DNA from: Lenisia limosa
Taxonomy: Eukaryota; Protista; Breviatea
Reading direction: 5' to 3'
Assembly (NCBI GenBank): GCA_001655205.1
Contig: LPNZ01009289.1
Span: 1 to 38,597 of the forward strand
DNA length: 38,597 bases
Under the pieces are notes generated by a model. It was not told the DNA's origin, made no database searches, and saw only the letters and a list, made by a program, of their open reading frames with translations. Positions 3,400-38,597 of this stretch are shown in pieces. How positions within the stretch are numbered: the stretch's first letter is position 1; each line of letters begins with the position of its first letter. The translations under genes and the position numbers were made by a program.

Positions 3400-4960
3400 G
3401 GGATAAAACTATCTTAAGCCCTCTGCAGAGGATAACCTGATTTTTACCCCCCCCCCCCCNNNNNNNNNNNNNNNNNNNNNNNNNNNNNNNNNNNNNNNNN
3501 NNNNNNNNNNNNNNNNNNNNNNNNNNNNNNNNNNNNNNNNNNNNNNNNNNNNNNNTGTACAAATGAAGAACACCACGGGTGAAGGGTACATTATAATTCC
3601 CGAAGTACATCTCGGTGTAGGCAGCAATGTCACTGTGGGGATAGGGGAATCGAGGGCTAGTGAAATATTGAGTTAACTGATTTCTATTGTGGTAAATCAA
3701 AGACTTGTAAAAGAAATACAGTTGTCAACCCATTTGTTATTTTTCCGAAATCCTCATAGTTCCCCTTTAGGTTTCCATTTTTGAGGACATAAACATGCCA
3801 GTCCAGCCGAACATGACAAGTCCATCAATGGAAGACCAGTTTTCGTATGTCTGGCATATTTTCTTAGATAGATATATTGGATGTCCAATGGCGCTCTGCT
3901 TTGTCGCATTAATAGAGCATTTATGTGCGTCGTAGGTAACAGCCTAATTTTCAGCTAATCAAATGATATACTGTCATTTTTGAGTAATGTTAGATGCTGT
4001 AAACCAGTCATTGATTTGATCGGCAAGGGTATACCGGAGTATTATCCTCATCAGACTTCACGAGCTATGGTATATTGAAAAAGTCGCTATAAATTATGTA
4101 AGATTTTTACTTTTTTTTTTTTTAATATTAAATACTTTTTGTTCTAACATTTAAGGATAGTCAATCTAGGAGGCTCTCCTGGTGCATATACGCACCTCGG
4201 CTTCTACGGATACTGTATGATAGGCTTATCCTCTTTTTTTTTTGTTTTCTTGTGTCAATTTTGNNNNNNNNNNNNNNNNNNNNNNNNNNNNNNNNNNNNN
4301 NNNNNNNNNNNNNNNNNNNNNNNNNNNNNNNNNNNNNACACACGTTTGGGCGTTCAAATTGTGTATTTCTTCCATTGTCGCTGAAACAGGGAGCTTCTTA
4401 TTTCACCAATATAGTGTTGATGATATACAGCACGATATTTTTCAGCTGTTTGTTTAGTGTCGAACCCGAAGGTCTCATCAGGCACCGATTTCTTCGAACA
4501 GCTTGTGTAGGTTGGGTGCAATGCTGTTCTCAAGTTTAGAGGACCTCCCTAAGTGACGCTTTCGCTTCTTTGAGCAACCACTGACCCAAAATTAGGCAGG
4601 TGTCTTCGGGTCAGTCGTTAATATCTTCATTTGGCTGCTCACCAGCCAGCCATCTGACCGTTACGAAGAACTGTTCTCCGGTAAGCCATTCCAACATCCC
4701 AAAAGATAATAGAATTTCCATTTGGTACATGGGTCACTGTTTAGATCTTATGAGTGGGTGTGATAAAGAGTCTACTCTCATTGAATCAGCGCTTTGCCTT
4801 CCTCTTGATGCTTTCAGTGGGTGGTAATGGAATGGTTTTGTAATGTGAGTAATATTGGATGATTGATCCACTACTTCACATCGTAATTGGAGGAAGCCTT
4901 GTAATTGATCACAGTCTTTTCGAAAGTATTCACTTCTCTTAACAGTATTGACTGCATAAG
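3400..4960 (-). CDS. Unidentified multi-exon protein; boundaries approximate, two gaps inside
   Basis: Exon-like blocks bounded by AG/GT: THVPNGNSIIFWDVGMAYRRTVLRNGQMAG, IAPNLHKLFEEI-AEKYRAVYHQHYI-ATMEEIHNLNAQ (three phase-consistent exons), AVTYDAHKCSINATKQ...CQTYENWSSIDGLVMFGWTG, YFTSPRFPYPHSDIAAYTEMYFGNYNVPF. No family recognised; start and stop not fixed. Confidence 0.45.
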
Positions 4961-10773: not shown

Positions 10774-13700
10774 TTATGCTTTCTGATTCCCACGGTACAA
10801 CAAACATTCGTATCGTACTTTATCGAGCAAACAGCGAACTGGATACATTGCTATTACGTGATCTAACGTCCAATGAAACAACTTAAGAAAAGACAATAGA
10901 AAAAAAAAAAAAAAAANNNNNNNNNNNNNNNNNNNNNNNNNNNNNNNNNNNNNNNNNNNNNNNNNNNNNNNNGTGTCGATGGCGTCCTCATATTTCCGAC
11001 GCAGCTGGTTGAGCTCCTTACTAAATTGGGTCAAACGTGTGACCAAGATGATCTCTCTGTCAGTTTTCTTCCAATAAAAATACAAATAAAAGCGAAATGA
11101 TAAGTTGCAGATTTCGGCGGATGTGTCGGTCAAGACTTAACATGAACACTGTATGATACAAAGCTCACTGTCGACCCAGATTCATGACTGTGAGATGGTG
11201 CTCAAGGTCTCTTCGTTTCATAAGAGAGAGCTGGAAGATGAATGACCGAGCTGATATGATAATTTCCCATTACAATTACCTTAAAAATACAAACACCACC
11301 CTGTTATTCTCACCTCTTCAACGGATTTGTTCGCAATATTGATGACATTCTTCTTCTTCCGTCTAATAGTGTCAAAATGGTATGTGAAAACGGGATTTTG
11401 TCGGATTTCCACCAAAAAGACAACACACTATCATAACCAGAATAGCCCGAGCCGCCCCTCACCTCCTTCGCGGAGCTGCAACAAAAGTACCACCATCCAT
11501 ATCATCAAGGTCATTGTCCTGGACTGGTGTTTGGACAAAGGTTGCCCCATCAAACTCATCTTCAGCGGCTATTGGGTTACCACTCATGTCGAGCTAAGGT
11601 CGTGAATAACAAAGGTTGGGCTTGGGAGTTTGAGTGGCTCAATGTAATAGTAATATGTCGGTCAAAAAGCAACCAGCCAAATATTGAATAAAAAAACGAC
11701 AATATCCCTGGTCCAATGAATACCATTTATGTAGTTTGGGTTCATTCACTTAAATGAGGAAAGGTCAGCATGTCATCCCCCCCCCCAACAGTGCCTTCAT
11801 CAAAGCCATCATCATCTTCATTGTTGTTGACGAGAAGTGTGGCCTCGTCATAATCTCCAACAGCTCCCTTTTTGTCGTCATAATCACCAACAAGAACTGT
11901 TTTGTCTTCATAATCCCCGACAAGAACTGTTTTATCATCATAATCCCCCGGGGCAAGTGTGCTATCGTCATAGTCAGCTTTTGTCTGCACAAGAACGGTG
12001 GAATCCGAATAATCAATGTCCTAAGAAGTAAACGGGTAGTACCCCAAGTCTACTGTGTTATAAGAATATAAAGGAGAAGTGCTAAGGTAACGATTAGTGG
12101 TATTGCTTGGCCTCACCTTCGGGCTCAAAACTTGGGTAGTTTCATATGCCGTATCGCAGGTAGTCATCTTTGGTTTGGCCTTGATTGTGGAGCCATCACA
12201 ATCAGTGAAGGAACCTATACGTGTGATAATTCTTCTTTTTTCAGGCTCAAAGACAAGAAAAATTACCAAAACATATCCCCGTCCACAAAACACTGGTGCT
12301 TTTTTGGATAAATTGGTGCTTTTTTTNNNNNNNNNNNNNNNNNNNNNNNNNNNNNNNNNNNNNNNNNNNNNNNNNNNNNNNNNNNNNNNNNNNNNNNNNN
12401 NNNNNNNNNNNNNNNNNNNNNNNNNNNNNNNNNNNNNNNNNNNNNNNNNNNNNNNNNNNNNNNNTTTGAGGACACGGGGGAGGAAGAAACTTGAGGTGTA
12501 ACGTATTCTGAAAGGTACGGTGTGTTTGAGCTGGCAGGGGAGTATGTGGGAGTTGTTGCTGAATTGGAGGGCGCCGTCGTATGGACACTTGGTCTTCGCG
12601 GCAGTGGAGGCTGGGGAGGGGGGGGGGAGAGAGNNNNNNNNNNNNNNNNNNNNNNNNNNNNNNNNNNNNNNNNNNNNNNNNNNNNNNNNNNNNNNNNNNN
12701 NNNNNNNNNNNNNNNNNNNNNNNNNNNNNNNNNNNNNNNNNNNNNNNNNNNNNNNNNNNNNNNNNNNNNNNNNNNNNNNNNAAAGCAAGGTGAAATATGG
12801 TACGCATCACAGAGGTTCAGAAAAGACAAAAAAAAATATCATCTTTGTTACTCCAGTTTCCTTTATTATCCGCATACAGCAGGGGTTTCCAGCTGGTCTA
12901 ACAAAGCAACTTGTGACGGACGTGGTGGTAGAGGCGGAGTAGGTGCAGCAGTATATGCTTTCCAATACCCATGTTTAGCCAATTCATACGCTTCAGAGCT
13001 ATCCTCTACAGAGCATCAAATGGCAGTATCATAAATGATACAATTCAGAAGGGTTACAACACCGTCCCGTCACTATTCAACTTCAACAGAATTAATATTA
13101 CATCAAAATTATGGAAAGAAAGTAAAATCATATTATATATTTGGTATTTAGAAAAATTATTAAGATTTCAGGAACCTACCTGGCGTAATACAGAGATCAA
13201 TACTTAAATTCTTGGCATTATTGATGCACTCCACGAAAATGGGCAGAATTGACACTCGATCATTGAGGGTTAAGTGGGGGGACTGCAGGATAATCTGAAA
13301 GGTATTAGTGCTTCAACTACATGTCATAGCTATGTGGAATTTTGAAAATGTGTTAAAAATATATATAACTAGTATCTCGATATGTACATATTATTATAAT
13401 AATACTATATAAATACTATACATATGAAGATTTCACATTTCACTCACCCCAACAAAACAGGGTAGTAGCAGAGAGCTTGCCATACCAAAGTCCTATTGAG
13501 GCGGCCCAGAAGCGGCTGAGGAGTTGAGCGTCTCAGTGCCGTGGCAAGAGGGGGCGGCGGTGGCGTACACAGCTGTTTAAGTGTTAATCAAAAGTACAAT
13601 GAAAAATGGAAGGAGTAGGGTTAGATTGTGGTTAACATCAAATTTTGAGAAGTTTGTTCTGATATTGAAATACAATTTTGGGGAAGTTGGGGAAACCCAG

Positions 13701-16150: not shown

Positions 16151-16470
16151 AAGGCGTTCAGGCAGATCATATTTATGGACGTGCGTGAGAATGACAAATG
16201 CAACCTGGGATCTGAGCCGCTTCGAAGTATTATTAAGCTATATTAAAGTTAAAGAGCATAAGGAAGGCTTCCAAACCACTTGTGTTGAGACTTCAGCAGT
16301 GAAAATAGGAGGTGATTTCACCTTGTACATCCTTCTTCTGTTTTCTATACTAAAATGAAATTATATGAAAAAGCCAAGGAAAACAAACATTTTGGATGTT
16401 AAGGTAATCCGGTCGCGCAATATTCCTGCAATATGTGGTTTTATTGAACCTCTCTCCCCCTCTCCCAGTG
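16150..16470. promoter_or_regulatory. Probable short bidirectional promoter/5'UTR region between the divergent genes
   Basis: Position only: it lies between the 5' end of the (-) gene and the ATG at 16471. A candidate 5'UTR intron runs from GT at about 16403 to CCCAG at 16468. No promoter motif identified. Confidence 0.3.
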
Positions 16471-19400
16471 ATGACTCCACGGGACCTCACGAGCGCCCTT
16501 GAGGGTGTTAGAATAGATGAGAATGCCCCTTCAAATGACGACTACAAGTTCTCACCCTCTTCTATAGCCTTCTTCTTTACACACCATTGCTACAGAAAGG
16601 TTCTTTTAGATTGCAAACGATCAAATCAAGGCAAACGAACAGGTTTGAATGAATACCTCGTTGAGTTCTTCCCCTTTTATCCGTGACATTGACATGGGTA
16701 ACCCGCAGATTCAAGCGCTAAATTTCCACAAATCTTCTGTAACATTACTAGAAAAATCCCCTATCCAGGAGCTCTTTGACAAAGGCAACGATTTTGAAGA
16801 CCGAGTATGGGGGCAATCTTATGTAATGATAGAATATAACCCATTGCAATTTCTTTATGTTCCAGCTTGAGCGAGACTTGATAGCCTCCGGACACCTTTT
16901 GGACCAAAATGGACGTACGGCCTGCGCCAATCGACTTAGGTGAGGGAACTGGGGTGATCATTGTTTGATTACCATTTTGTTCCAAATCTGTACACTATAT
17001 TTTTTTGACAGCTCGAAACATTTATTATTGTATTCTGGATATCTTCAAAGTTTAATAGTTTTAGCAATCTGGTTGAGACATTTCTGGAAGGCGACAAGGA
17101 TGAAATGTGGATCCGTGGCGTGTGGTTTGGTCCCCCCGGAAAAGTGGGTTTGGTCCCCGGAAAAGAGGGTTTTGGTCTTTGTTGAAGCCGATTTTTTGTA
17201 AAGGTCTTTTCACCTTTTGTAGAAGAAAACGGCTATAGTGGACTGGAGTGAGGTTCTGCCCTGCATAAACAGTAACGTACAGTTTGACTTCATCAAGGCT
17301 ATTAGGTGATAATTTTGTAGATAATCATGTCACAATTGGATTCTCGGAACTTAATAATAGCAGTTAGCTCCTCTGCCAATCACGCGGCAGTTATCAGTAC
17401 TTACACACTTTAGGAAGGGGTCGAAGGTAGTCCTTGAGATTATTGACGCGAAGGCAGCTGATCACCCCAAGGCCTATCACAGAGCCCAGGTTAGCATATC
17501 AGAGATGTACATTATATCGTATGTACTATGTGCGATACGTTTTATCAATCAACACCTCTTTCCTTCACTGTACCGTTTGTTTATAAATTCATTGGATATG
17601 GTTGGCTTGATGCATTCCTTAGCAATGGCTTGTGTAATGGCCTGATTCAGATACCATGTTCATATCTTGTTTTTCTTTCATCATGACAGGTTGCAATGTA
17701 CGCTGAGATTATGGCAGCGGTGATATCTTATGAGCAAAGCAAGAAAAGGATGGTCAATGTGGAACCATCCCTTTACGGAGGAGTGTGGTGCCTCAAGCAC
17801 AGCAAAGATAATTACCATGTATGACGAGAAGTAGTTTTCGAAGTTTGAATTTGTTTCCTCCAGTCTTCTGGCCAACCAAATAGAGATAATAAAAACGATT
17901 CAAAAGCTGTCAATGGCCACAGCTATTTATGCGATGTGTATCAAACCATGGATACCACATAGAAATTGCATTATTGTCCAATTTTGCATCGATGATAGCA
18001 GTGTTTTCTTTTTGATTTATGATATAATGTAGTATGCAGTGTGACTTTATAACACACTGATCTATTCAGAGATTCCTTTTAGCGCCAATGGTGGTCACTA
18101 TCCACCAAGTCCTTCAAAATCTTCAGGAGAAAGTCGGCCAAGTTGGTGTGGGAATGCTATGGCAAATTTACTTCATTTCGAAAAAAGGGGAAAGTTACTT
18201 GGGCAAGCAAAGAGTTTACCAAATCCAGACGTGACATTCATGTGACATTTTTTGGGCTCCGTGCAATTAATTTTTTGAAGAAATTAATTGACAAAATTTG
18301 AAATTAAAGTGTCGAAAATGGAGTTTCCATGACAATAGGTCTCACTTCAAATTCGGCAATTAATTTTTCAATTAATTGCACAGAGCTGTAGAAATTTAAC
18401 ACATTTTACAGTTTTGTGTTTTGAATCAACGGTGGGTACTGACTGTCTCAAATGTTTTTTTTTGTTCAGAGATATTGATCAATTCAAATGATCAGTCGTC
18501 TATTTCTTTCTTTGATCGGGTTTACTAAATGATAATTTAGAGTGGTGATACATTGTTGAATATACCAGGGCCCTTATCAACTTCGTGTTACTCATGTGAA
18601 AAGGTTGATGCATGTCGGGCTATGGTATGTGGGTAAAGCTAGAGGCTTTCAGTGTTGCCGAATATGAAACTTTAATAGCTGTTTAATTATTTAAGGCAGT
18701 ACGGCAAGTTTCTGTTGAGTCTCTTCCCGCTTTGAGTCTTGAGGTACTGGACGTTTTGTGTATATGCTCGTGGTCCTAAACCCTGTCGTCAATTCGAACT
18801 ATTGCCGTTAATTCAATTTTTTGTGACTGTCTCTTTTTCATGTTCCTGTCAATTTCACAACAGTTTAACTCGTAAAAATGGACATAGTATGAGAAAATGC
18901 GAGCTTAAACTGAAAAAAAAACTGAGCGAGCGTGGCGCTTAAAAAAATTAAATTTTCGCGATAAAGTTAGCTGATCTTGCACAAAAAAAAAATTGAACGG
19001 TTACTTTTTTTCTTTGTTTCCTTTCATAAACAAATAAGTGTAAATATCTCAGAAATATATTACTGTTTTGAAGGGGAATAGCTGATTTGGCGACAGTAAA
19101 TCATTAACGACATAATTTTGGAATATAATTTTATTTTATATATTTCACGGATTTATATGCAGTCAGACTTTCTATGACACAGAGGACCACAAAGATTCAC
19201 TTTTAGGATGCTGCAACCGCTGTAGGCCTCGAGTCCAAATATCGCAAGAAGGGACAGACGGGCATGGAGGTATTTAATCCTTTGTTATGCTACATTGTTG
19301 ATACTGTTTTGGCATATTGTGGTGAAGCTTCACTTTATTTGAACTAACGTTCAAGGCAATGAGTTACCTTGTTCATGCCGAAAGACCCCAAGCAAGTCTC

Positions 19401-22400
19401 AAAACAGACCCCTCTCATGAAGATGTGATAATGGCTGTTGCTATTCTGCAGCGCACTTTAGGCTTCATTGTATGCTGGTTACCAGTAGTTATTCCAAATT
19501 AATAATATTGTTTTCTGATGTTTAAAATGATGCTTTTTTGATCTTGATGACTTTTAGTGTTTCTCACCGTGTTGCGCTTTTTGTATGCGTAGTTGTCTTG
19601 GGTCTTTTCTGTAACATATTTGTTTTTCCAGATTTTTTTATCAATGAAGCAAGGACTATTGGCCGTTTGATTTCGTAACAACCGTTTTAGCCTGAGATGG
19701 GTCATACACCAGTCAATAGCAGGTTTGTCCAGCCCTCAGAGCTCATCATCGACTCAGTTGCAAAAATAGAGAACGGTACGTGGTACCCGTCTGATTAGTA
19801 ATATGCTTAGTATTTATATTCATATATTTCAGGATATCATGATATGTACATCAATATAATTATACATAATGATATAGCCATATGTGTATTTTTTTGGATA
19901 TTTGTTTGTACAACTAAACAATCGATCCCTCTTAGATACACACAGCTAATATAATTATAGCTAAATATTATTTCGTTATATTACTGCTTTTGACATCGTA
20001 GCCACCCTCATTGGAATCAGCCTACACAATGATCTATACACCAATAACCTTCGCGCCTGGAGCTGGATGTAGGTCAATGAGGGGTTTTCTGGCTAAATTA
20101 GACTTCATCTATTGGACATCTTTTTTAATGGAGTGATCAATCCTACTCTTAGGAAATGAAGTTATGGTCTAGTCACACATAGTCTCTTATGTATCAAATG
20201 CCAAAAAGGGTTGTCGTCAGGGATTGGTAATGATGTGAAAAGCCGTCACACAATGTTACTCACCTTGTCGTTTCAAGATAACCCACCTAGATCCCGCGAT
20301 ACAAACATTCCTGGAAGAACCCATCGTCAAAATGGTCATGTTGCGTATCGCCCTTCAAAAAAACAGGTGAATTATTTTGTATATTTATGAAGATAAATCA
20401 TGGGAAGATAAATCATGGGACAGATAAAGCATGGGAAAGTAAATATCGATATATGATATTAATGTTAACGCTATCACATCCACAATTCTGAAGTTTTCAG
20501 TCCATCGAAGTGTCTCAGTATTTGATCAAGAGTCTTGCTGACATTTTACTCGCTCATTCGTCCGTGCAGCACCGGTTGCTCATTGTCACTGAAAGTGGGT
20601 ACTTAAATCATCAAAAGATTCTCATGGATGACCAACATCAACTTTGGTGATTATTAATCACACTTTTGTTCCCAGAACACTAATCATGGGTTTTACACCA
20701 TTAAAATCTTAAAAGCTAGCTTGGTTTCCATTTGTCGATCTTGCGAATCACTTCAAAATAGCTGGCTTATGATCCCATGCTTTTTCTAATTCCCAAAGAT
20801 AAGCTGCAAACAAACCTGCTAGTCAACACAATTCTCAGTGTTCTTGAGTGCTCCAATTCTGCTCAGGTTCGCATATTTTTTGCTTCAGTTATGTTTATAT
20901 CTTTTCACTTTCAGATTTTTAATAGTTTTTCTCTTGTATTAACCTATTTCGTCTTCATCCCCAAGCTTGTCGATGACTGTGTGCTGGTACTGGCCAATTT
21001 GGTGTCTGACGGACGTGGGGTCAATAGCCGCACTATGGACGTTGAGTTTGCCATCGGCCAGCATTGCACTGCTGTAAGAAGATTGGGTGTTGGGTAAAGG
21101 AGTCACAGTAAATTTGATCTTTTGACATTTCCCCCAAAATCCTTTGAATTTTGAAACACCGCTTGATTAACCAACATACAATCACTCTGAGCAACACTTG
21201 CCTATTGTCACATTCGATAGCCAATGTTGTGCGACGTAATGCAGCTCAAAAAAGCGTTCCGTTGCAACAGGCCTGGTCCTAATACCATTCAAGATATTCT
21301 TGAAGGCCTTCCTCGTTTGTTGGGTATTTTAACCAGTTATTTCTGTGTTCGTGTCCAGCCCATAAAAAATTGTTCATTTCATTCACCATTCCTGAAATTA
21401 GTTTGTAAAAAGTATTTAATTAGTGCTACTTTAAATCCTGCAGCCCCAATGTGCACCGCCAGACCAGCTTGCCTATCAGTGGACAACAACATTCAAAAGG
21501 AGGTAGGTTCATCATCAGATCAATGGTCCAAAGGGATTTGGCTCTAACCCCATGCATAAAGGTATAAAAAGTGATTTGATTTTGGATGTTAATCAGCTTG
21601 TTTGTAGACAATGGAATGCTTCGACACCGTTTTTTAAATGCCATCTACGGTTTCTTACTTACACTTATAGACAGAACTGCTTGATGCACTCCAAATGAAA
21701 TCGCAGACCATCTACGACGTCTTCAAATTCTTGTCGTCAAAGTGTTCAGAATCCCTTGTCAACTTCGCCCCCGTCCCTATCATCCCAAAAACAGCAACGT
21801 TAGTACTGTTCAACATTATCCTCAATCATCTCAGAGACTTGAAATCACCTTTTATTTGAGGACATTTCACTTAGTGATTGAAAACTTCAATGTTGTGAAT
21901 GCAACTTATGAAATATTGTAATACATTATCCTGATATTTTTTCAGATTATTTATCTTCTTAGACTTCCACCATCACTTCAGCTACTCTACCAAGTGGAAG
22001 ATGTTGAGGTAGTGCGGATTGCCTCTTTGAAATCTGCATGTTCAACATTGCCTCACACCTTAGTTTGCCACTGAAGCCAAACAGTGCAGAGAATCCCGGC
22101 TCAAAAGCCTACAGGATCCCAATGCCACTTCCCTTCCGATTGTCATCAAAGACTATAATGCACCGTGTGAGGTAGGACTGTTAACGCTCTTTGTTCACCT
22201 GCTAGATTCCATTGACCGAAGGCACAAGGTCGCAGCTCTTCGCCTTCTTTGGCCCAACATTCCTTGCCACGCCAATCACACACACCGACGACTCCAACCT
22301 GATCTTCGGTTCATATGCCGATTTGGACCCACGAGGTCGGTGGAGACTTTCATAGTACCAGCGAATTCAAAAATGAATAAAACAAACCATAATGTATGTA

Positions 22401-25400
22401 ACGAGTATCATTTTTCAATTGAATAACTCACAGTGACCCATCATCAGCGTTATGTTATTGCTGTTCCTGCAGCATTAAAATTTCTTCTTTGATACTTGCT
22501 TTAATACAAATGACCTTATTCAAAGAGTAATTGTTCTGTTGAATCCCATTCCTTGTCTTCTGACTTCGTAGATATGCGAGCTGCTGCAATAGCATCTGCC
22601 CAATTTTCTGATGCGATGGAGGATTCGCTTGAAGCCAAGGTTGGTTCTGTACAACCACCCTTCATGAAAGACATGTGATAGAATGTCTCCAAGAGTGTCA
22701 TTTGTGAGGTCCAAAAGGGCCCTATTCTGTATAATACAAACTATGCTCATTCAGAGACAGCTGAAAACCTGTCTGACCTCAATGTTTATTTATATATGTA
22801 TGTATATATACTGTATATGTCAAAATAATTGAGACTTTATTGAGAACTATGCTGTGGTGTGTGTGTGTGTGTGTGTGTTGTGCTTTTCTGGTGTATGACG
22901 AATAGGTTGTTTGAATAAAAATGGTATTAAGTATACTCTGATGATACTAGGACTCGCGGTTCACTTCTGCGAAGTTCATGTCAAAGAATGGCAGGGAAAC
23001 AGTTTTTCTGAAACCAAAACAAACGGTCACGCCACACGTCTTGGTGCCACGAACAATGGATGTCAACCTTGAGAAGGTTGGTCAAATACTCATATTTCCG
23101 CCTCCTCAAACTACATCTTATCTTCAACAGAGGAAACTTGGGCTAATTGCCATCTGTGCTGGAAATGCCTCTTTTGGGGAGAGACGTGCTTTGAAACTTC
23201 TCCAAAGACAAGACCCTATCCAAGGTAGCTGGTTTTTGTGAACTTTCATCTCAAAAACGTATGTGTTTGTATACCCAGGATCGTGCTTGTTTTCTTCCAA
23301 GATCTAAAGAGGGGAGCAGGCCTTCATAGTTCTTAGGAAACCTTGTACCCTCAGCCGATGAAGTTAATCAACTGACATTTACACAAACTCAAGGACTTTC
23401 GTAGGCAGTTCTTGTTCTGTTGTAATGACTTTGCCTTCGCATCGTTTTCACTGACATTTCTGATAGGTTTCTTGATTCACAAGCAGCAGCTTTCAGCACC
23501 ATCGCCAAAAACTGTGTCACGGTGAGTTGAACGCGGTGTGATATTTTGAAATAATACATGCTTTTTTGAGGAACAAGAATGTAGGTGGAATTCAGTTGTT
23601 TCATCCAAAACAGTGTATCATCATAATGGAGCAGGGAGCTGCGTATTATTTCTTTATTGCATTAGACTGTCGCTGGCCCACCCGGCACCGGAAAGACACA
23701 TTTCATGGCGCTAACCATCCTGCACCTTGCCCGAGCATTTCACAACAGTCAAAGCGGACGGGCGTTCCGAGTGGGTGCTAATTGATTATTCGTGTACATA
23801 CATATTAATTTGTATTGAATGAGTGTATTAATCTATTATTCCACAGGTTATTGTCACTGCGTTCACACATGCTGCCATTCAAGAGGTGAGACAGGGTCAT
23901 TGAATCGTCTGTACATGTTTCCCTTCGCAATTGATTATGCAATTCTAAGGCATTCGCATTCAACACCTTTTTATTTTATAGGTTCTTTCAAAGGTCGATC
24001 AGCTTGCGCCTGCGTTCCAAGAAGATAACCCTGAATGTGTGTCAAGAATAATAGAATTATAACATATCTGTTCATATCATAGTAATATTATATAATATAT
24101 ACAATGGTGCCTGCAAGAACCAACGATTCATAAGTCGGATTTTGGACTGGTCCTACTTACCATTCTGTTCGGAACTTTTATGTATATATCATATATTTCT
24201 TGTATAATTGTTGTTTTAAATCCCATTCCAATATCTTTGTTACTGTAGGAACTGATTCTCACACCAACACATCAGGCAACACAATTGTCACTCGGCACGT
24301 ACAAGGCGGCAAGGCTGCCCTCAAAGGAAAGCCCACAGACTACGTCGTCATCAATGGGGCTACTGCGTATGGTGTCAAGTCGGTATGTTGAGGTCAAACC
24401 AATCGACTGTTTCATAATCTACTCTGGGTTAAGAGAGAACCTTCGCTAGTATCTCAAGTGTTTTCTGCTCGTTGGGCAGGCGAAATAGGATGAAAGGAAC
24501 CTATTGATTATGTCACTCTGTAGGCCAAGGTCAACGAGGCCGACCTTGTGATCATTGATGAGGCGTCCCAGGTTAGTGGGGGGTTGTGATCATTGATGAG
24601 GCGTCCCAGGTGTGGGGGGTTGTATCAGTATATCCAAAACAAAATGAAGTTGAGAAAGGGTTCAGTATAGCATGGAGATGAGTCCGAAGACAACGTCCAA
24701 ACCAAACTATTACAAATTCATGGTATCAGAATATTCAATCAGAGCATTTCGTATTCATCAAGTGCAACAACTCTTAATTTGAATCACAATTTTTTTTAAT
24801 TCATCCAAAAATCGGCAGGGTTGTTTAACGAATGAGTGTGGAGGGTTGATATTTATCCATTAAATTTTACTTGGAGAACCTGGTGTGAAAAAGTCTTCCG
24901 ACTTGGGTTTCATTCACTCTGGTCTAAAAACGGCCGCTGACATATCGATAGTATTCAGAGAATTTATCGAGAGATTCAGCATTTTTTTGTCATACTACCG
25001 ACACGTCGGCTGTCACGATGTAAAACAGCATTGTACAATGTTCGCGCTCTTTCTATTCTATTCCGAGTATTTTCTTCCAATTACAGTTTAACAACCTCTC
25101 CATCGAACAACCTCACTGCGTAGGTTCCTCAGAGTCATCTTGCACTCATGCTTGCACATATTGCTGAGACTTCCCGCCTTGTCGTCGTTGGCGATTCGGA
25201 ACAGGTCAGTCAACAGTCCTGCGGTGTGTTTGTTTCGTTTGAAATGTTAATATTAAGCATTGAGTTAACGTTTCAGCTTCCCCCCATTCTCAAAGCAACC
25301 TATCCTGAAGCACTCGAGAACACAGTTGCCTCTTCTTTAGCGCTACTCGAGGATAACCCGGGTAGGTCCACGCAGGCAATAACCAGTTCTATCATATTAC

Positions 25401-27462
25401 TGAAGCAATGTTTCTGAGCAGTTTTATAGTGGTATTGGCATTCTTCTAAATCATAGTAGATCTCTTTGTGATTCTTGTTTCTTTGATGGTGTACTTTTAT
25501 TAACACCTGGGAAGAAGTGTAGTATTTCTACATTAATACCCCACTTACATGTAACGTACTAGCTGTCGGCCACACAAAGTTGACGCAGACGTTCCGACTT
25601 GTTAGTGACATTTCTGAGGCTGTGACCCAGTTGTACGACAACGGGCTGGTTTCCATTGCACCACATTCGCCAAACCTCCAAGACTGTGTGATGGGTGAAG
25701 AGATGCCGTTTTTTAATATTATAATTCAAGTATCAACGATGATCCTTATAAGTATCCAATAGCAGCATTATGCTGACTACTTAATCGTCCGTCGCCGTCA
25801 TTACATGCTTATCTCATTTTGTTACACAAAAGCAAAAACACTAGTTTTGACCGCGTAGTTACCCCACGCACGCGGCAGCTGGAGCAATCCGACCTCAGTA
25901 CTGCAAACCAGGTCGAAGTTGTCCGTAGACTGGTGGGCTAGGTTTATCTGTGGTTGTTTCATTAAACTGCAAATATTTGCTTTTGCATTCTCCTGGTTAG
26001 ATGTATTTCATATCCCCCCCCCCCAGGCTGGAGTCCTCTGCAGCCGACAGCCTCGAGGGTTGGCTGCCTTAGTGCTTCAGACGTCAAGAGCCACACACAC
26101 CCATGAGCAGATCGTCTCCCGTGGGATACGCTGCTATTACATACAATCAAATTGAATTGGCTTTATAGCAATGCGCATTTTCAAACAATATTAAAAAAAC
26201 CCATCTGATGTTCCTCATAGGGGGACTTCGTACGACAATCGAGACCATTCGTTTGCTGTTGGCGCTTCTCCTCAACCGTCCGGAATTGGTTGAAGGTGCT
26301 GATGACCAGTGCCGGTTTGAGGATTATGATGTACCAAATGGATAGAAACTTTGGTGGAGAAACATGCTGTTTTGGTCTCCGTTTCACAGAATGAACCTGT
26401 AATATTTCTACATTTAGTCTTTTGATTACTCTTCAGAATTGAAGGTGAAGAGCCCAGTAGGCCTCTCGTCATTGTGTCCACTCCTCAAAGAATCGAAAAG
26501 AACCTACTGAGGCAGTACCTCCCTCATTTGGTGAAGAATAATGAGTATGTTCGTTCCATAGAGTCAGATACATTGTGTTTTTGTTTTGTTTGGCTTCTGT
26601 GCTTTATTTCCCGAAGATTTCTCTTGTATTGTTAAGACTTGTCATGAGATTTTTTAAGATGGATACAAAAGCACAGTTTTTTTAAAACATGCAGAGAGTT
26701 CAAGGAGAGCGGTACCGCATGGGTGCTCATCGATACTGTCAACAAAATGCAGGGCAAGGAGGTATGTCTAAAAAAAATATTCCGCCTTGGGGAGTCAGGT
26801 CATCAGTCGTTTGGACAGTATATTAAACGGTGTTGGCGATAGGCGTTTGAGCTTCACCAAGTAACTCTTTTGTTTTATTGAAAGCGTATCTTTATTCAAC
26901 TCCCCCCCCCCCCCNNNNNNNNNNNNNNNNNNNNNNNNNNNNNNNNNNNNNNNNNNNNNNNNNNNNNNNNNNNNNNNNNNNNNNNNNNNNNNNNNNNNNN
27001 NNNNNNNTCAACAAATGACTTTTTCTACTGTAGTAACAGAGTCAATGTGGCGGCGACAAGGTGGGTATTGATAATTGGAGTATTGAATTTATGGCGTAAC
27101 AGCACAAAATGAACCAATTAGCACAGAGTACTTTTCGGCCCTCGTGATAAAGAAGGGGTGGAATTGAGTATAAAAATACCGTTGTTTCTCAAGAGTATAT
27201 TTCACTGTTATTGTTGTGTTTGCTACCCAGGCATTCACAATCCCAGAGCACGACGGTTGAGTGTGGTCATCACAGCTTCGGAGACCCTCGACCCCCCACC
27301 TGCGGCCATTGCTTCCGAAGACGCCGGCAAGGGCATGGATACGCTCATGGTGGGGGGGGGGTATACTCTGTTTATCATGTTATCATACGTAATAGTATTT
27401 TTCTGGTGACCATTTAGAATCTGGTGTCTCAAGCAAAGATCTACAGCCAATGGTTCAATTGA
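16471..27462 (+). CDS. Fe-S PD-(D/E)XK (Cas4/AddB/Dna2-type) nuclease fused to a UPF1-like SF1B helicase; about 45 exons, about 1,300 aa
   Basis: Hand-spliced, largely phase-consistent model from ATG 16471 to TGA 27460-27462. Nuclease: FSPSSIAFFFTHHC (16471-16599), KGNDFEDRL (exon 16709-16804 joined to the next), VQFDFIK (17223-17305), IIDAKAADHPKAYHRAQ-VAMY (17414-17489 joined to 17690-17818), CYSCEKVDAC (18586-18615). Helicase: DSQ, GPPGTGKT (23675-23698), VIVTAFTHAAI, IIDEASQ (to 24571), VVGDSEQ-LPP (25124-25204 joined to the next), LTQTFR, DTVNKMQGKE (to 26761), NRVNVAATR-AR. One exon segment is hidden in the gap at 26915-27007; exon and length counts are approximate. Confidence 0.92.
17124..17177. 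repeat. 21-23 bp tandem repeat spanning the exon-4 donor of the nuclease-helicase gene
   Basis: GGTTTGGTCCCCCCGGAAAAGTG-GGTTTGGTCCCCGGAAAAGAG-GGTTTTGGTC. Confidence 0.85.
18256..18386. mobile_element. 131-bp hairpin, MITE-like, inside intron 18146-18568
   Basis: Terminal inverted repeat GCTCCGTGCAATTAATT (18256-18272) versus AATTAATTGCACAGAGC (18370-18386), 16/17 match, extending imperfectly to about 40 bp (GAAATTAATTGACAAAATTTGAA versus TTCAAATTCGGCAATTAATTTTTC). No coding capacity and no clear TSD. Confidence 0.5.
20389..20444. repeat. 15-16 bp intronic minisatellite, about 3.5 copies
   Basis: GAAGATAAATCATGG twice, then GACAGATAAAGCATGG and GAAAGTAAAT. Confidence 0.85.
21580..21625. repeat. 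46-bp dispersed direct repeat; second copy at 27961-28006
   Basis: TTTTGGATGTTAATCAGCTTGTTTGTAGACAATGGAATG(C/T)TTCGAC, 45/46 identical. Confidence 0.95.
24546..24615. repeat. 38-bp period tandem duplication of the Walker B (DEASQ) exon end and its donor site
   Basis: TTGTGATCATTGATGAGGCGTCCCAGGT at 24546 and 24584, each followed by a G-run. Confidence 0.95.
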
Positions 27463-27969
27463 CATTATTTGTTATTTATTATGTATTACTATTTTGCCTT
27501 CGTTTACTTTACTTCAGTAGTATTAGTATTAATTATTAACACATTAAGAATATTTTTACAATCAGTGAATATTGAACATTGAACCTTGTTCGAAAATCCA
27601 TCTACTTTTCAGCAAAAATATCAGAATACAATTAGACCCTTGAAAACATATCGACGATATAACACATGAACCTAGAACACCTATACTCCTTTCCACATTT
27701 TTTCACAAAACGACCGGACCGAACCCTTGGCACTATTAATGACAGTGGTGTGTCCTAAAATGTGACTACTGATCTCATTCATTCAAATCCGTCTTCACCC
27801 CCCCCCCCTGACCATAATCAATCATTTATTGATGTGCCAAGGAGTTAAAGTCTCCTGCCACTTCTCCCAGAAAACCTGGTCACGATAAACAAACTTTTTT
27901 GAAATATATTGAAAGACAACGTTTCGATTCTCAGATAAACCATCTCAGGCTCTTTTTTACTTTTGGATG

Positions 27970-30900
27970 TTAATCAGCTTGTTTGTAGACAATGGAATGT
28001 TTCGACGTACGAAGAATTTGGTGACTCTTAGTAAGCATTGCCCACACCTCCTCCAGATCCTCAACCTCCTGAATGGACAATCAACTAACCTTTCATAATG
28101 AATGATAATATAATCATACTTATAATTCCCATGACAAAAAGACAGAGAGTTGTTCACTGCGCTAAGTATTTAGATATACTCATATACTTGCCCCTTCACT
28201 CACCTCGCAATTTGGAGGTCCGGTAATAAGCTGGTATATGACAGCTTCATCTTCAATTTATCCTCAACTGCAAATACCTGATTGAGGTCATGAATTTTTT
28301 AGATAAATTGGGATAATACACCTTCCCCTCCCCCCAGACCCAATGACCAACCAGCAAGCTGCTGACCCCTCCACCCATCATCTTTAGGTAGACATGCATA
28401 TGGATATTGGATAACCACTCCAACACGGTGCTATAACATCACAAACAATTAAAATGGCTTCAACACCAATGTCCGTGGTGTATATATGACAGAATGTGAC
28501 TGCTCCATGCTGCTATTATCTTTTCAGCTTAACTTACATGTTAATCTCTTCGTTTAAGTTCAATACAAGAGCATTTATCAGTGATGTGTGTCGATTCTAT
28601 CATTGTGATTTCAAATCACTTGTAAACCCAACCTCAATGAACTCTGTGACTCGATATGTTGGGTATTTCGGACCAACAGACCAATTTCTTTTGTCAAACA
28701 CCCATAAGTGAGTTTCAAAACTAAGATCCAATCTCTGAAACATCAAAAATGCACATACTTGTGGAAATGTCATTTCAAACGGCTTACATTGAGCCATTTA
28801 ATCAAATCATCCCACTTTATTCCCTTACTTTCAATCCAGGGCTCTTCAAAACAATTGGTACCAGTCTCTCATAATTAAAAAATAATTTGGGGATTATAAT
28901 TCCTGACTAGTTGGTTCCATAGCAATAGTATTAAGTGATATCTTTTTAACTAACCTTGAAGTGTGGTTATGAGGTTTGACATCGTCAAAACTGTTCTTTT
29001 TTAACCAAAGGAAGTCCAATATCGTCAATCAGAGTTCGTATTATGTAGTGACTACCAATGGACTGTGTGGTGAGAGCAGAATTGACAAGATGTTGAAAAC
29101 AGTCAACGTTGTTCCTTGGTTGTATTCCAGTGTCTATGACATCATTAAGCATTCAAAAGATTCAATACAAGCAACAGAAGAAGGAAGAAATAGAACTGTG
29201 AAACTAATAAACGGAATTGTCTTAATCTCAATTGTTATTTGAATATAATAGATAAATAATCGTTATAAACCCGTTCATGTGAATAATTTCACAAAATATT
29301 GAATGACACAATCAATTATAACCACCCACTCAAAATAAGATGTACCCAACATCTTCAATCCAAAGGAATATGGAGCGTCACATCAGGCTGTACACTCTAA
29401 ACCCTCAGACAACATTGAGGTAAAGATTTAGCTCAAATGTAGCAAAAGGGTGTGCAAATAGTAATATTATATTTATCATATTATATATATATATATATAT
29501 ATATCATATACTATTAGAACAGGTGTATGCTAGATGGACAAGGACCCATGCCCACGGTTGGAGTACTAATATTCATATACTTTACTATTACGTATAATAA
29601 TGGTAATTATATTGAATAGCTTATAAAATGACGTGTTTACTTGAGGAACTTGTTCTCAGTATACCTCCAAAGTACGCTTCTCAAGAAGTCAATGTCTTTT
29701 GAAATGTTGAAAGCTATGATGGAACTTCCAATGCTGTTCAGCAGAAGGGCATCTTTCTGATTGTGTGAACCAGATATCATCAATAGACATTCTGACAGCT
29801 GTAAAGAGTAAGCTGACCGTAATATCACTTTCAAATAAATGTTCCACTTTTTTCACCTCATAAAGTAAAACCTGGTCAAGTAAAGTAAGTTACATACACT
29901 GTATAAAGATTTTTAGTGATAGACTTTGATTAATTGACTATTTTCTAATATAGTTATTATACAACTATATTATTCACACAGCTTTGGCAATGAGATGTAC
30001 TCAATAATACAATAATTTATCAAACATTTAAATGCATGTTAGAATAATTAAAGTGTTCGTACTTGATCAACAATACCAGTCAGGTTAGTCCTAATACCCC
30101 ATTACACCATTCAGAAAGTCATCCATTGTCAAAATAATGGGCATTTAATTTACACTTCTCTACTACTATTCCTATCCTTGGGACGGATCACAGCGAGGGC
30201 GAGGGGACCTACGTAACAATTGGCTATTATGACCAAAAGGTGGCTCCTATTGTCTCCTAATTTGAAATTTCTCAAAAAGATTACTTCATCTTGATGAAAG
30301 AAGTAATAAATCACTGATTAGTGACATACAGACGGACTACTACGATTACTAAAGTACATTCTGATGGTTTTTCAAGTTTGGTGAAGTCCAAATGTTAAAT
30401 CATAATGTTCTATGGTAACTTGCTATATTAGGAAAGTTATGATATAACATTTCAGCCATTTTGCTTTTATCCATTGTGGTTTCCACTTGTTTTTGTTTTA
30501 TTTGTTTAATACTTTTCCAGTAATAAGGACATAAGGTCTTACCAAAAAGAGTAAATCACACACCAAACATGTTATTACGCCAAAAGCAGTTATTATGACA
30601 ATAGATATGTGGTGTCGGCCTATGAGCTTCGAAAACTAAAATATGCAATCTTGAGCACATTGGAATGCCGCAGGAGATCCACAACATTTTCACAGGGGTG
30701 AACTATATCGCTGGAGGTTTGGACTCATCCTTTTGCAGATTTATACACAAAGGGTGTAGCATAATAACTGAATAATATTGGTGAATTTATTAGTCTTTGT
30801 GGTAATTTTTGTTGGATGAAGAGCACCATTTAGTACAATTTAAAACCTCTAAATCTGTTCAGAAAACAGAGTATCAGTTGACCAAATTAGGCTGGTCAAA

Positions 30901-36900: not shown

Positions 36901-38597
36901 GAATGATGAATATTAAAGGAATAAGGTGTACTCAAGGCCATTGCCAGTCAAATCAACGACAACGAGTCTCACCGTTTTCGGCTCGTATTCTACCTCCACG
37001 TCCTTTTGTATTCTGGACTCTTGGCCCTCCAGCATGACCGTGAGAATCGGTCCGCCGTCCTCCTCCACCGCAGACTATAATGGTCAGAAATGCCTTACAA
37101 AAGGACCCGAATCGAGAAAATCAAACTAAGAAAAGGAACAGCAAAATGGGATTATTCATCACCAGATTCTCAAGGATTGGAATGCAGAATTTAAACCCTT
37201 TGTTTTTCCACCCCCCCCCCCACGCTNNNNNNNNNNNNNNNNNNNNNNNNNNNNNNNNNNNNNNNNNNNNNNNNNNNNNNNNNNNNNNNNNNNNNNNNNG
37301 AATAGGGTGGCAAGCCTGTCTGTTGGATCTGAAAAGTCAGACCAAAATTTTGGATATTGGGCAGAAAATAATAACAACATCAATATGGGTCACAGTTTTA
37401 ATATATACACATGTATGAGACATACACCTTATGGTGATAACTCCCCACAAACCCGAACAGAAGCCTCGAGGAACTTTCCCACAGAGGGAGGCAGATGTTT
37501 GAACACTGAATCCCACCATCTACGCAGGTATGAGCTCAGGAGTAACAATTAGCGAAGAAGTAAGCGAGGGAAATTCTAAATTGAATTCCCAAGACAGAAG
37601 CAAACAGAAATACACATTCTCACATTATCAAAACTGCTAAAAAAAAATAATAATGGGTANNNNNNNNNNNNNNNNNNNNNNNNNNNNNNNNNNNNNNNNN
37701 NNNNNNNNNNNNNNNNNNNNNNNNNNNNNNNNNNNNNNNNNNNNNNNNNNNNNNNNNNNNNNNNNNNNACCATCGGAGGGGCCGCACAATATGGGCGACA
37801 ATGAGCTGCGGAGTAAGTTGAATGTTAGAACAGCATTGGCTCAAGGGAATCTCCAATATTTAGTGAGCAAATTCCTAGTATACATTGTGGTTAGGGCTTC
37901 ACTTCGGTTCAAAAAAGACCGGGAAAATATCGATAGTTTTTGACGATTTATCGATAAATTCCGTCTTTTTTCGAACCGAAGTGAAGCTCTAATTGTGGTA
38001 GTATGTGAAGTATTTCTTGGATGTATAACCCAACACTGCCACATTTCACCCCCCCCCCCNNNNNNNNNNNNNNNNNNNNNNNNNNNNNNNNNNNNNNNNN
38101 NNNNNNNNNNNNNNNNNNNNNNNNNNNNNNNNNNNNNNNNNNNNNNNNNNNNNNNNNNNNNNNNNNNNNNNNNNNNNNNNNNTGCATCCACGGGGAGCAG
38201 TATCGGGCGGTTCGACCACGGAAGGGCTAAACGGTGGTTATGAAGTGTGGAGAATTCTATGTTGACCAGTCTGAATCATATTTCTCGGTCGAGACTTATC
38301 AAGGCCTGTGTATACATGTACAGTTGCGAATCATTCAAAATTAAAAATTTTATCATATGCATGAAGCATTACAAGGAAGGCTTGCCACTAATTTGTGATA
38401 GACCAGGTAAGGTAGAAACTATCGACTACTACGGGAAGCCCTCGTGAAAGCATAACCCATCTCACTTTGAAAGCGTTGCCTCCTTTGCAATCTGATAATC
38501 GGAAACTACAAGCGTCAGGATACGTTCTTTCATCTTGGCACATTTTGCCAACAGAGTTAGCATGTATCATACTTCTGTGCACCCCCCCCCCCCCACC
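27970..38597 (-). CDS. Long unidentified multi-exon gene or genes, convergent with the nuclease-helicase and continuing past the right edge
   Basis: Candidate last exon 28068-27970 reads EVEDLEEVWAMLTKSHQILRTSKHSIVYKQAD*. Many AG/GT-bounded blocks lie upstream: DEAVIYQLITGPPNCE, RLDLSFETHLWVFDKRNWSVGPKYPTYRVTEFIE, LSECLLMISG...KDIDFLRSVL, VYLSRLRPNIPTLPNKTLPVQIPIEG, SAVEEDGGPILTVMLEGQESRIQKDVEVEYEPKT. No continuous model could be built; six gaps. Confidence 0.5.
32973..33011. repeat. GGTGCTTTTT-core minisatellite (19-bp period) running into a gap
   Basis: GGTGCTTTTTGCAGAAATC-GGTGCTTTTTTGGAGTATC-G followed by Ns. Confidence 0.75.

Follow-up and report, generated by a model that had tools for sequence, protein, structure and literature searches.

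The 38,597-nucleotide (nt) stretch of DNA analysed here, referred to as the window, is contig LPNZ01009289.1 of the breviate Lenisia limosa (assembly GCA_001655205.1). At positions 16471-27409, its forward strand contains a gene for a protein with an N-terminal iron-staple nuclease, a central region, and a C-terminal superfamily 1B (SF1B) helicase. The 45-exon model of the gene reads as a single open frame of approximately 1,263 amino acids (aa), and the coding region is supported by GT-AG introns together with joints and depth in RNA. The structure of the gene, its expression, the motifs of its product, and the homology of both end domains to bacterial nuclease-helicase fusions of the TM0106 family are established here. 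An earlier note, made from the DNA letters, had assigned the motifs to one spliced protein, and all those it quoted lie on the forward strand in the single frame of the model.

Stop-free stretches between positions 16471 and 27409 of the forward strand are numerous and short, and together they hold all the nuclease and helicase motifs. The gene was rebuilt from splice sites because the longest of these stretches has only about 120 codons. All 43 introns of the model are of the GT-AG type and have a median length of 134 nt, and the median exon is 78 nt long. Contigs from an L. limosa polyA RNA library (run X1) were placed on positions 17700-23699, and joints in these contigs confirm 17 exons. 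One contig with a length of 2,399 nt provides ten GT..AG joints and spans the central region into the exon encoding the Walker A motif. Pieces of a second, 577-nt contig could also be placed, and its remaining exons were positioned using assembler depth per 200-nt bin. After shifts of 2 nt, the RNA-joined exons read as one open frame. The sixteen central-region exons at 19356-23224, which are supported by joints, contig pieces, and depth, encode 488 aa without a stop codon.

The exon content of the model equals the RNA depth in 13 of 13 bins between 21100 and 23699, two of them being off by about 2 nt of exon, and the agreement reaches the bin that contains the first 34 nt of the Walker A exon. 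RNA coverage is present in bins all along 17700-23699, and RNA contig 1 stops at about 21009, within the same exon in which contig 2 starts at 21010. The share of 31-mers found in the RNA run was 0.27, compared to 0.28 predicted, for the region of the nuclease exons (16400-17700), and 0.20, compared to 0.22 predicted, for positions 22000-26000. After position 23337, the modelled exons sum to 1,415 nt versus 1,482 nt of RNA contig still to run. The nuclease exons were joined to the central region because of the open frame, the RNA coverage, and the organization of all the relatives as single chains.

The exons outside the RNA-placed set were modelled using a small splice-site and codon model, which was trained on the RNA-placed exons and applied with hand checks. 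Exons 17065-17143, 18127-18193, 18696-18743, and 19207-19269, and the block 25859-26514, are tentative. Ranking 87,109 alternative exon chains for positions 16471-17489 by profile score left the middle exons of this segment unsettled. The C-terminus is tentative beyond position 27349, including the stop codon at 27407-27409, which replaces the gene end at 27462 proposed previously. The RNA-verified introns include very short ones, at 22172-22205 (34 nt), 22009-22063 (55 nt), and 23077-23130 (54 nt). The last of these is in frame and stop-free, and its retention would add 18 residues and leave the frame intact.

Nuclease, central, and helicase regions

Exon 1 (16471-16642) is present in the RNA run and matches the extreme N-terminus of bacterial TM0106 proteins. 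It contains the start ATG, the FSPSS motif at residue 27, and the first iron-staple cysteine, C40 (HHCYRK). The motif I region (GNDFE, residue 69) is encoded by exon 16752-16804 and is aligned with the G..HE of the TM0106 family. The motif II aspartate (QFDFI, residue 146) is located in exon 17223-17305, the donor of which was picked by hand and has a weak score of -0.3, and is aligned with the family pattern G.aDFL. Exon 17414-17489 encodes motif III (EIIDAK, residue 162) and the beginning of the Q-x3-Y motif (HRAQ), and gives a hidden Markov model (HMM) domain match to positions 131-165 of the TM0106 family with an i-E of 2e-4. The Q-x3-Y motif, HRAQ|VAMY (QVAMY at residue 179), is formed across the junction 17489|17690 and is completed by exon 17690-17818, with bin 17700-17899 showing RNA depth. 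The three C-terminal iron-staple cysteines, C251, C254, and C260 (C-x2-C-x5-C at 251-260), are part of the sequence CYSCEKVDAC, encoded by exon 18569-18624 with RNA depth in bin 18500-18699; the acceptor of this exon is at 18541 or 18569.

The signature of the predicted iron-staple nuclease is complete, with D148; E162, D165, and K167; Q179...Y183; and one N-terminal cysteine in addition to the C-x2-C-x5-C cluster. All the nuclease elements described in the earlier note are in place. The nuclease begins at residue 25-27, in agreement with the proposed start within about 30 residues of the N-terminus, and it leaves no room for an alpha1/OB region of the Dna2 type ahead of it, unless there are unseen upstream exons. 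Against a profile of the TM0106-family nuclease, the first 270 aa reach 19.4 bits, compared to 11.0 bits for the best of 2,000 shuffles. Using hhalign, residues 21-194 are colinear with the TM0106-family nuclease, with a P of 2e-4 for an alignment of 18 sequences and 9e-4 for one of 84 sequences. The alignment runs in the order of first motif, G..(H/F)E, DF(L/I) aspartate, E..D.K, and Q...Y, and the N-terminus of the model is aligned from family residue 4. A tblastn search of plasmids with the nuclease exon returned nothing relevant.

The central region extends over the 572 aa between the last cysteine and Walker A, close to the spacer of roughly 550 aa estimated previously. It has no match to any profile in the single-exon scans of Pfam and NCBIfam or in the HMM and hhalign comparisons with TM0106 fusions. 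A 91-aa read-through of two RNA-verified central exons has no relative among 1.84 billion representative proteins. Comparison of the central region with 18 TM0106-family segments gave Smith-Waterman Z-scores from -1.6 to 0.9. A degenerate RNase_H_2 domain proposed by eye (LIIDSV / IVTEN / LVDDC) was dropped, as the Z-scores give it no support; the region may contain a structural remnant of such a domain.

The SF1B helicase motifs I, Ia, II, III, IV, V, and VI follow each other in the expected order, as had been recognised previously. Motif I, the Walker A sequence GPPGTGKTHFMA at residue 832, is encoded by exon 23666-23770, the first 34 nt of which lie under RNA contig 2. This exon provided the only match in the single-exon scans of Pfam and NCBIfam, to AAA_11 with an E of 0.0017. 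When single exons were compared with solved structures, again only this exon matched, weakly, to UPF1 and nsp13. Motif Ia, TAFTHAAI at residue 867 (exon 23847-23885), was, like the Walker A sequence, found as quoted in the earlier note. Motif II (VIIDEASQ, with DEASQ at residue 942) is located in exon 24524-24571. Exons 25124-25204 and 25277-25361 (positions 25124-25361) form motif III, GDSEQ|LPP at residue 969, across the splice junction 25204|25277. Motif IV (LTQTFRL ... YDNGL, residue 1009) is encoded by exon 25563-25685, and motif V (TVNKMQGKE, residue 1170) by exon 26695-26761; motifs Ia, II, IV, and V are all in frame. Motif VI (NVAATR|AR, residue 1205) is assembled across the junction 27060|27247 from exon 26885-27060, which contains NRVNVAATR, and the last modelled exon, 27247-27409, which contains ARRLSVVITAS... 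and the C-terminal tail. The TR|AR junction restores the TM0106-family pattern NVA.SRA..l..vv.S.

The end of the motif II exon and its donor are part of a tandem duplication at 24546-24627, which comprises 2.2 copies of a 38-nt unit with a 93% match. The unit includes the GT donor, and there are two copies of DEASQ, of which the first alone can be spliced in frame and the second is intronic; the duplication is either real or an assembly artefact.

The exon containing the first half of motif VI is interrupted by an assembly gap of 93 N at 26915-27007, located between motifs V and VI. The stop-free stretch 26882-27109 reads across the 93 N, with both flanks in the same frame as drawn. The acceptor at 26885 is the only one fitting the reading phase, and the frame is open from there to 27060. 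The missing piece is probably only a few codons long, because approximately 12 residues separate the equivalent positions in the bacterial relatives compared to 8 plus the gap in the model, and, given the length of the RNA contig, the gap and the 3' untranslated region together have at most 67 nt. The left flank of the gap ends in a run of 13 C (26902-26914), which is the likely cause of the assembly break. The number of N is an estimate of the gap length, and the continuity of the frame across it is plausible.

Relation to known helicase-nucleases

A tblastn search of plasmids with the Walker A exon identified a Sphingobium gene annotated as "TM0106 family RecB-like putative nuclease". The 1,099-aa product of this gene contains TIGR03491 over residues 12-484, RNase_H_2 (PF13482) over 312-485, and AAA_11/AAA_12 over 704-1065. 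Twelve further diverse plasmid copies and 80 chromosomal copies from many phyla were gathered. The Lenisia model matches a profile of 84 fusions with a total of 102 bits, of which the helicase contributes 92 and the segment of motif III and QxxxY 7. The helicase match extends over model residues 775-1230 and profile positions 730-1137, starting shortly before Walker A and ending beyond motif VI, and hhalign is also colinear with the bacterial fusions over residues 825-1230. Over 25 aa, the Walker A exon shares 60% identity with one of the bacterial TM0106 fusions; the identity of the Lenisia protein to bacterial proteins is only 25-30%. The distance between the motif III aspartate and the Walker A lysine is 673 aa, compared to 593-700 aa (median 629) in 51 bacterial TM0106-helicase fusions. 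Judged by sequence, bacterial TM0106 fusions are the counterpart of the protein in its two end domains and its overall geometry, and it shares with them the position of the nuclease at the extreme N-terminus, the order of motifs, the C-x2-C-x5-C cluster, the C-terminal helicase, and the spacing.

The closest relatives retrieved are all bacterial. A protein search with the Sphingobium sequence found only close alphaproteobacterial relatives, and a search of the ESM Atlas only bacterial clusters. An exact search for a spliced junction in metagenome contigs returned no match, and neither did a scan of viral contigs.

By analogy, the layout of the Lenisia protein best fits the three-domain Bad (bacterial DNA2-like) enzymes. 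In Bad from Geobacillus stearothermophilus (Wilkinson et al. 2020), a RecB-family Fe-S nuclease occupies the N-terminus and an SF1B helicase the C-terminus, and on the domain between them "no information can be gleaned" (PMC7430649). It is a single-stranded DNA-dependent ATPase, a single-stranded DNA endonuclease, and a 5'-3' translocase and helicase, and it loops DNA (PMC7430649). Its relatives are reported from Firmicutes, some Proteobacteria, and methanogens, whereas Mycobacteria and Rhodococcus have enzymes of a second class (PMC7430649); one of the TM0106-type sequences collected here comes from Rhodococcus. Both proteins have three domains with a featureless centre and a similar length (1,245 aa for Bad and approximately 1,263 aa for the Lenisia protein), and residues D150 (nuclease motif III) and K815 (Walker A), which were mutated in Bad (PMC7430649), correspond to D165 and K838. 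Unlike the Lenisia gene, that of Bad is prokaryotic and intronless, and the likeness is drawn from the published description of Bad rather than from its sequence.

Dna2 also combines an iron-staple RecB-type nuclease and a UPF1-like SF1B helicase, in this order, in one chain (PMC4716839, PMC6943134). In mouse Dna2, however, residues 1-122 form an alpha1 helix and an OB domain that precede the nuclease, and a beta-barrel and stalk are located directly before the helicase (PMC4716839). The Lenisia nuclease, in contrast, starts at about residue 25, and its cysteine cluster is 572 aa away from Walker A, a difference that refers to architecture only. In Dna2, the nuclease and Walker A are separated by roughly 350-400 aa. 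The helicases UPF1, IGHMBP2, and Sen1 share Walker A GPPGTGKT, DEASQ, GD..QLPP, QG.E, and NVA.TRA with the Lenisia protein, but have no nuclease domain. Among solved structures, IGHMBP2 (135 bits) and UPF1 (113 bits) come nearest to the helicase of the bacterial relatives. The nucleases Cas4 and AddB share the four cysteines (1 + C-x2-C-x5-C), the D...E.K core, and Q-x3-Y; Cas4, however, is a stand-alone protein of approximately 200 aa, and the nuclease of AddB is C-terminal to an inactive SF1A helicase.

On plasmids, TM0106-helicase genes (L001 3853-10892, L003, L006, and L011) are accompanied by divergent WYL-domain regulators. The Sphingobium fusion gene is followed by SbcD-like and SbcC-like genes, and that of Acaryochloris is preceded by McrBC. 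Plasmid fusion genes are also found near toxin-antitoxin genes and insertion sequence elements. It is possible that these neighbourhoods represent an uncharacterised defence or repair module. At L008 2489-4765 and L012 3001-7388, the TM0106-helicase gene is interrupted by an IS5 transposase, resulting in separate nuclease and helicase open reading frames. When five bacterial fusions were analysed using PADLOC, the best match of the helicase part was Mokosh MkoA, no model covered the whole protein, and two of the five had a weak additional match of the nuclease domain to DruK or Cas4.

Identity and possible role of the Lenisia protein

We consider it fairly probable that the locus is a genuine, expressed nuclear gene encoding a single three-domain DNA2-like helicase-nuclease with the prokaryotic layout of Bad and the TM0106 fusions, rather than that of canonical Dna2. 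Its activity, substrate, and cellular role we infer by analogy. The most likely activity would be the one known from Bad and Dna2, ATP-driven 5'-3' movement along single-stranded nucleic acid with coupled endonucleolytic cutting, because neither enzymatic domain has lost any catalytic residue. By analogy with these two enzymes, the helicase would load on single-stranded DNA, travel 5' to 3' using ATP, and pass the strand to the nuclease, which would cut it endonucleolytically. Its substrates may therefore be DNA ends, flaps, or DNA that is foreign or aberrant.

Several observations weigh against this assignment. About one-quarter of the exons were modelled without direct RNA joints, and none of the listed RNA contigs bridges the nuclease exons to the exon starting at 19356 (17820-19350). 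The confirmation of the coding sequence by RNA suggested in the earlier note was accordingly partial: the joints at 19356-23224, the link to Walker A, and the fit of depth and k-mers were obtained, whereas neither the nuclease-to-19356 join nor the assembly gap was bridged. Neither profiles nor hhalign detect RNase_H_2, the domain that accounts for half of TIGR03491, in the central region, and the conserved block that follows it in TM0106 fusions has no HMM or hhalign match there either. In the maximum-likelihood tree of the helicases, the 22 bacterial fusions that were sampled group together in a clade (98/99) without the Lenisia protein, which is on a branch with a length of 5.5 and weakly joined to a Bacteroidota IGHMBP2-like helicase (89/78). 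The length of the branch may be caused partly by mis-modelled exons. The placement is one among bacterial sequences, and the outgroup of the tree consists of five bacterial helicases only. Forcing the Lenisia helicase together with the fusions costs 2.0 log-likelihood units, and a sister position is not rejected (approximately unbiased test, p = 0.23). The membership in the TM0106/AAA_11/AAA_12 fusions proposed in the earlier note is in keeping with the nuclease and helicase matches and the spacing; strict membership is unsupported because RNase_H_2 was not found and the helicase falls outside the 98/99 clade. The sequences stop short of strict membership, and the protein may be a sister of the TM0106 fusions.

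The organism's own Dna2 orthologue, having lost the OB region and gained a long insert between nuclease and helicase, could have diverged into such a protein. The order of domains and the four-cysteine type of the nuclease are equal, the helicase of Dna2 is UPF1-like too (PMC4716839), and the TM0106-family profile matches mouse DNA2 among the solved structures with 94 bits, not far under IGHMBP2 (135 bits). We regard this origin as unlikely: the nuclease starts and aligns as it does in the bacterial family, the 673-aa spacing fits the bacterial fusions and Bad, and the best solved matches of the Walker A exon are UPF1 and nsp13 rather than DNA2, although these are weak (E 0.14). A division of the locus into two adjacent genes for the nuclease and helicase, or a frame broken at the gap or in the poorly modelled stretches, is less probable still. 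Such a division would be compatible with the unbridged segment 17820-19350, the tentative exons there and at 25859-26514, and the true gap length, which is not given by the N run. An open frame is nevertheless achievable with canonical splice sites throughout, RNA extends across 17700-23699 with contigs 1 and 2 meeting in one exon, contig 2 ties the centre to Walker A with a length within 67 nt of the model, and the bacterial relatives are single proteins with the same layout. Bacterial contamination or a recent, unexpressed transfer, suggested by the bacterial origin of all the nearest retrieved relatives, is highly improbable given the 43 spliceosomal introns and the low identity to bacterial proteins, and is refuted by the spliced polyA RNA.

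Alternatively, the three-domain helicase-nuclease could be an RNA or nucleic-acid surveillance or immune enzyme, destroying the nucleic acid of viruses or transposons. Helicases of the UPF1 family take part in surveillance in eukaryotes. The bacterial relatives are located on plasmids near WYL regulators, an SbcC/SbcD-like pair, McrBC, and toxin-antitoxin genes, and their helicase matches Mokosh MkoA. The PADLOC matches, however, cover only the helicase part apart from the two weak ones to DruK and Cas4, the eukaryotic gene has no informative neighbours within the window, and the characterised analogue, Bad, acts on DNA ends. We therefore consider this function doubtful. The bacterial gene context is compatible with defence, plasmid, or repair functions and provides nothing direct on the eukaryote, so an immune role of the Lenisia protein, drawn from analogy, is speculation. 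There is a similarly small chance that a eukaryote acquired an enzyme of the Bad/TM0106 type beside its canonical Dna2, fitted it with a lineage-specific centre, and uses it as an effector of defence or genome surveillance.

To our knowledge, enzymes combining an iron-staple nuclease and an SF1B helicase are known in eukaryotes essentially as Dna2, and descriptions of the three-domain "bacterial DNA2-like" enzymes are limited to bacteria and archaea, where we know of no assigned cellular role. The kind of enzyme is known, and what would be new is a prokaryote-style DNA2-like helicase-nuclease with an orphan central domain in a eukaryote. If the assignment to the Bad/TM0106 layout is correct, the intron-rich, expressed gene shows that this class of enzymes crosses domains of life. 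It would provide a second Dna2-like motor, a non-essential one, in which the coupling of unwinding to cutting could be studied, and a testable link between the helicase-nucleases of prokaryotic plasmids and defence islands and genome surveillance in eukaryotes. Structure prediction has a clear target in the orphan central region.

Other gaps and repeats in the window

Other runs of N in the window, such as 3460-3555, 12327-12781, and 38060-38182, also abut homopolymers of C or G, which appear as PPPP or GGGG beside X in the translations. This suggests that sequencing failed only over short distances at the homopolymer-flanked gaps of the window and that no long stretches are missing there. A 51-nt direct repeat with 94% identity is present in an intron of the gene (21575-21625) and downstream of it (27956-28006), and is probably part of a small dispersed element.

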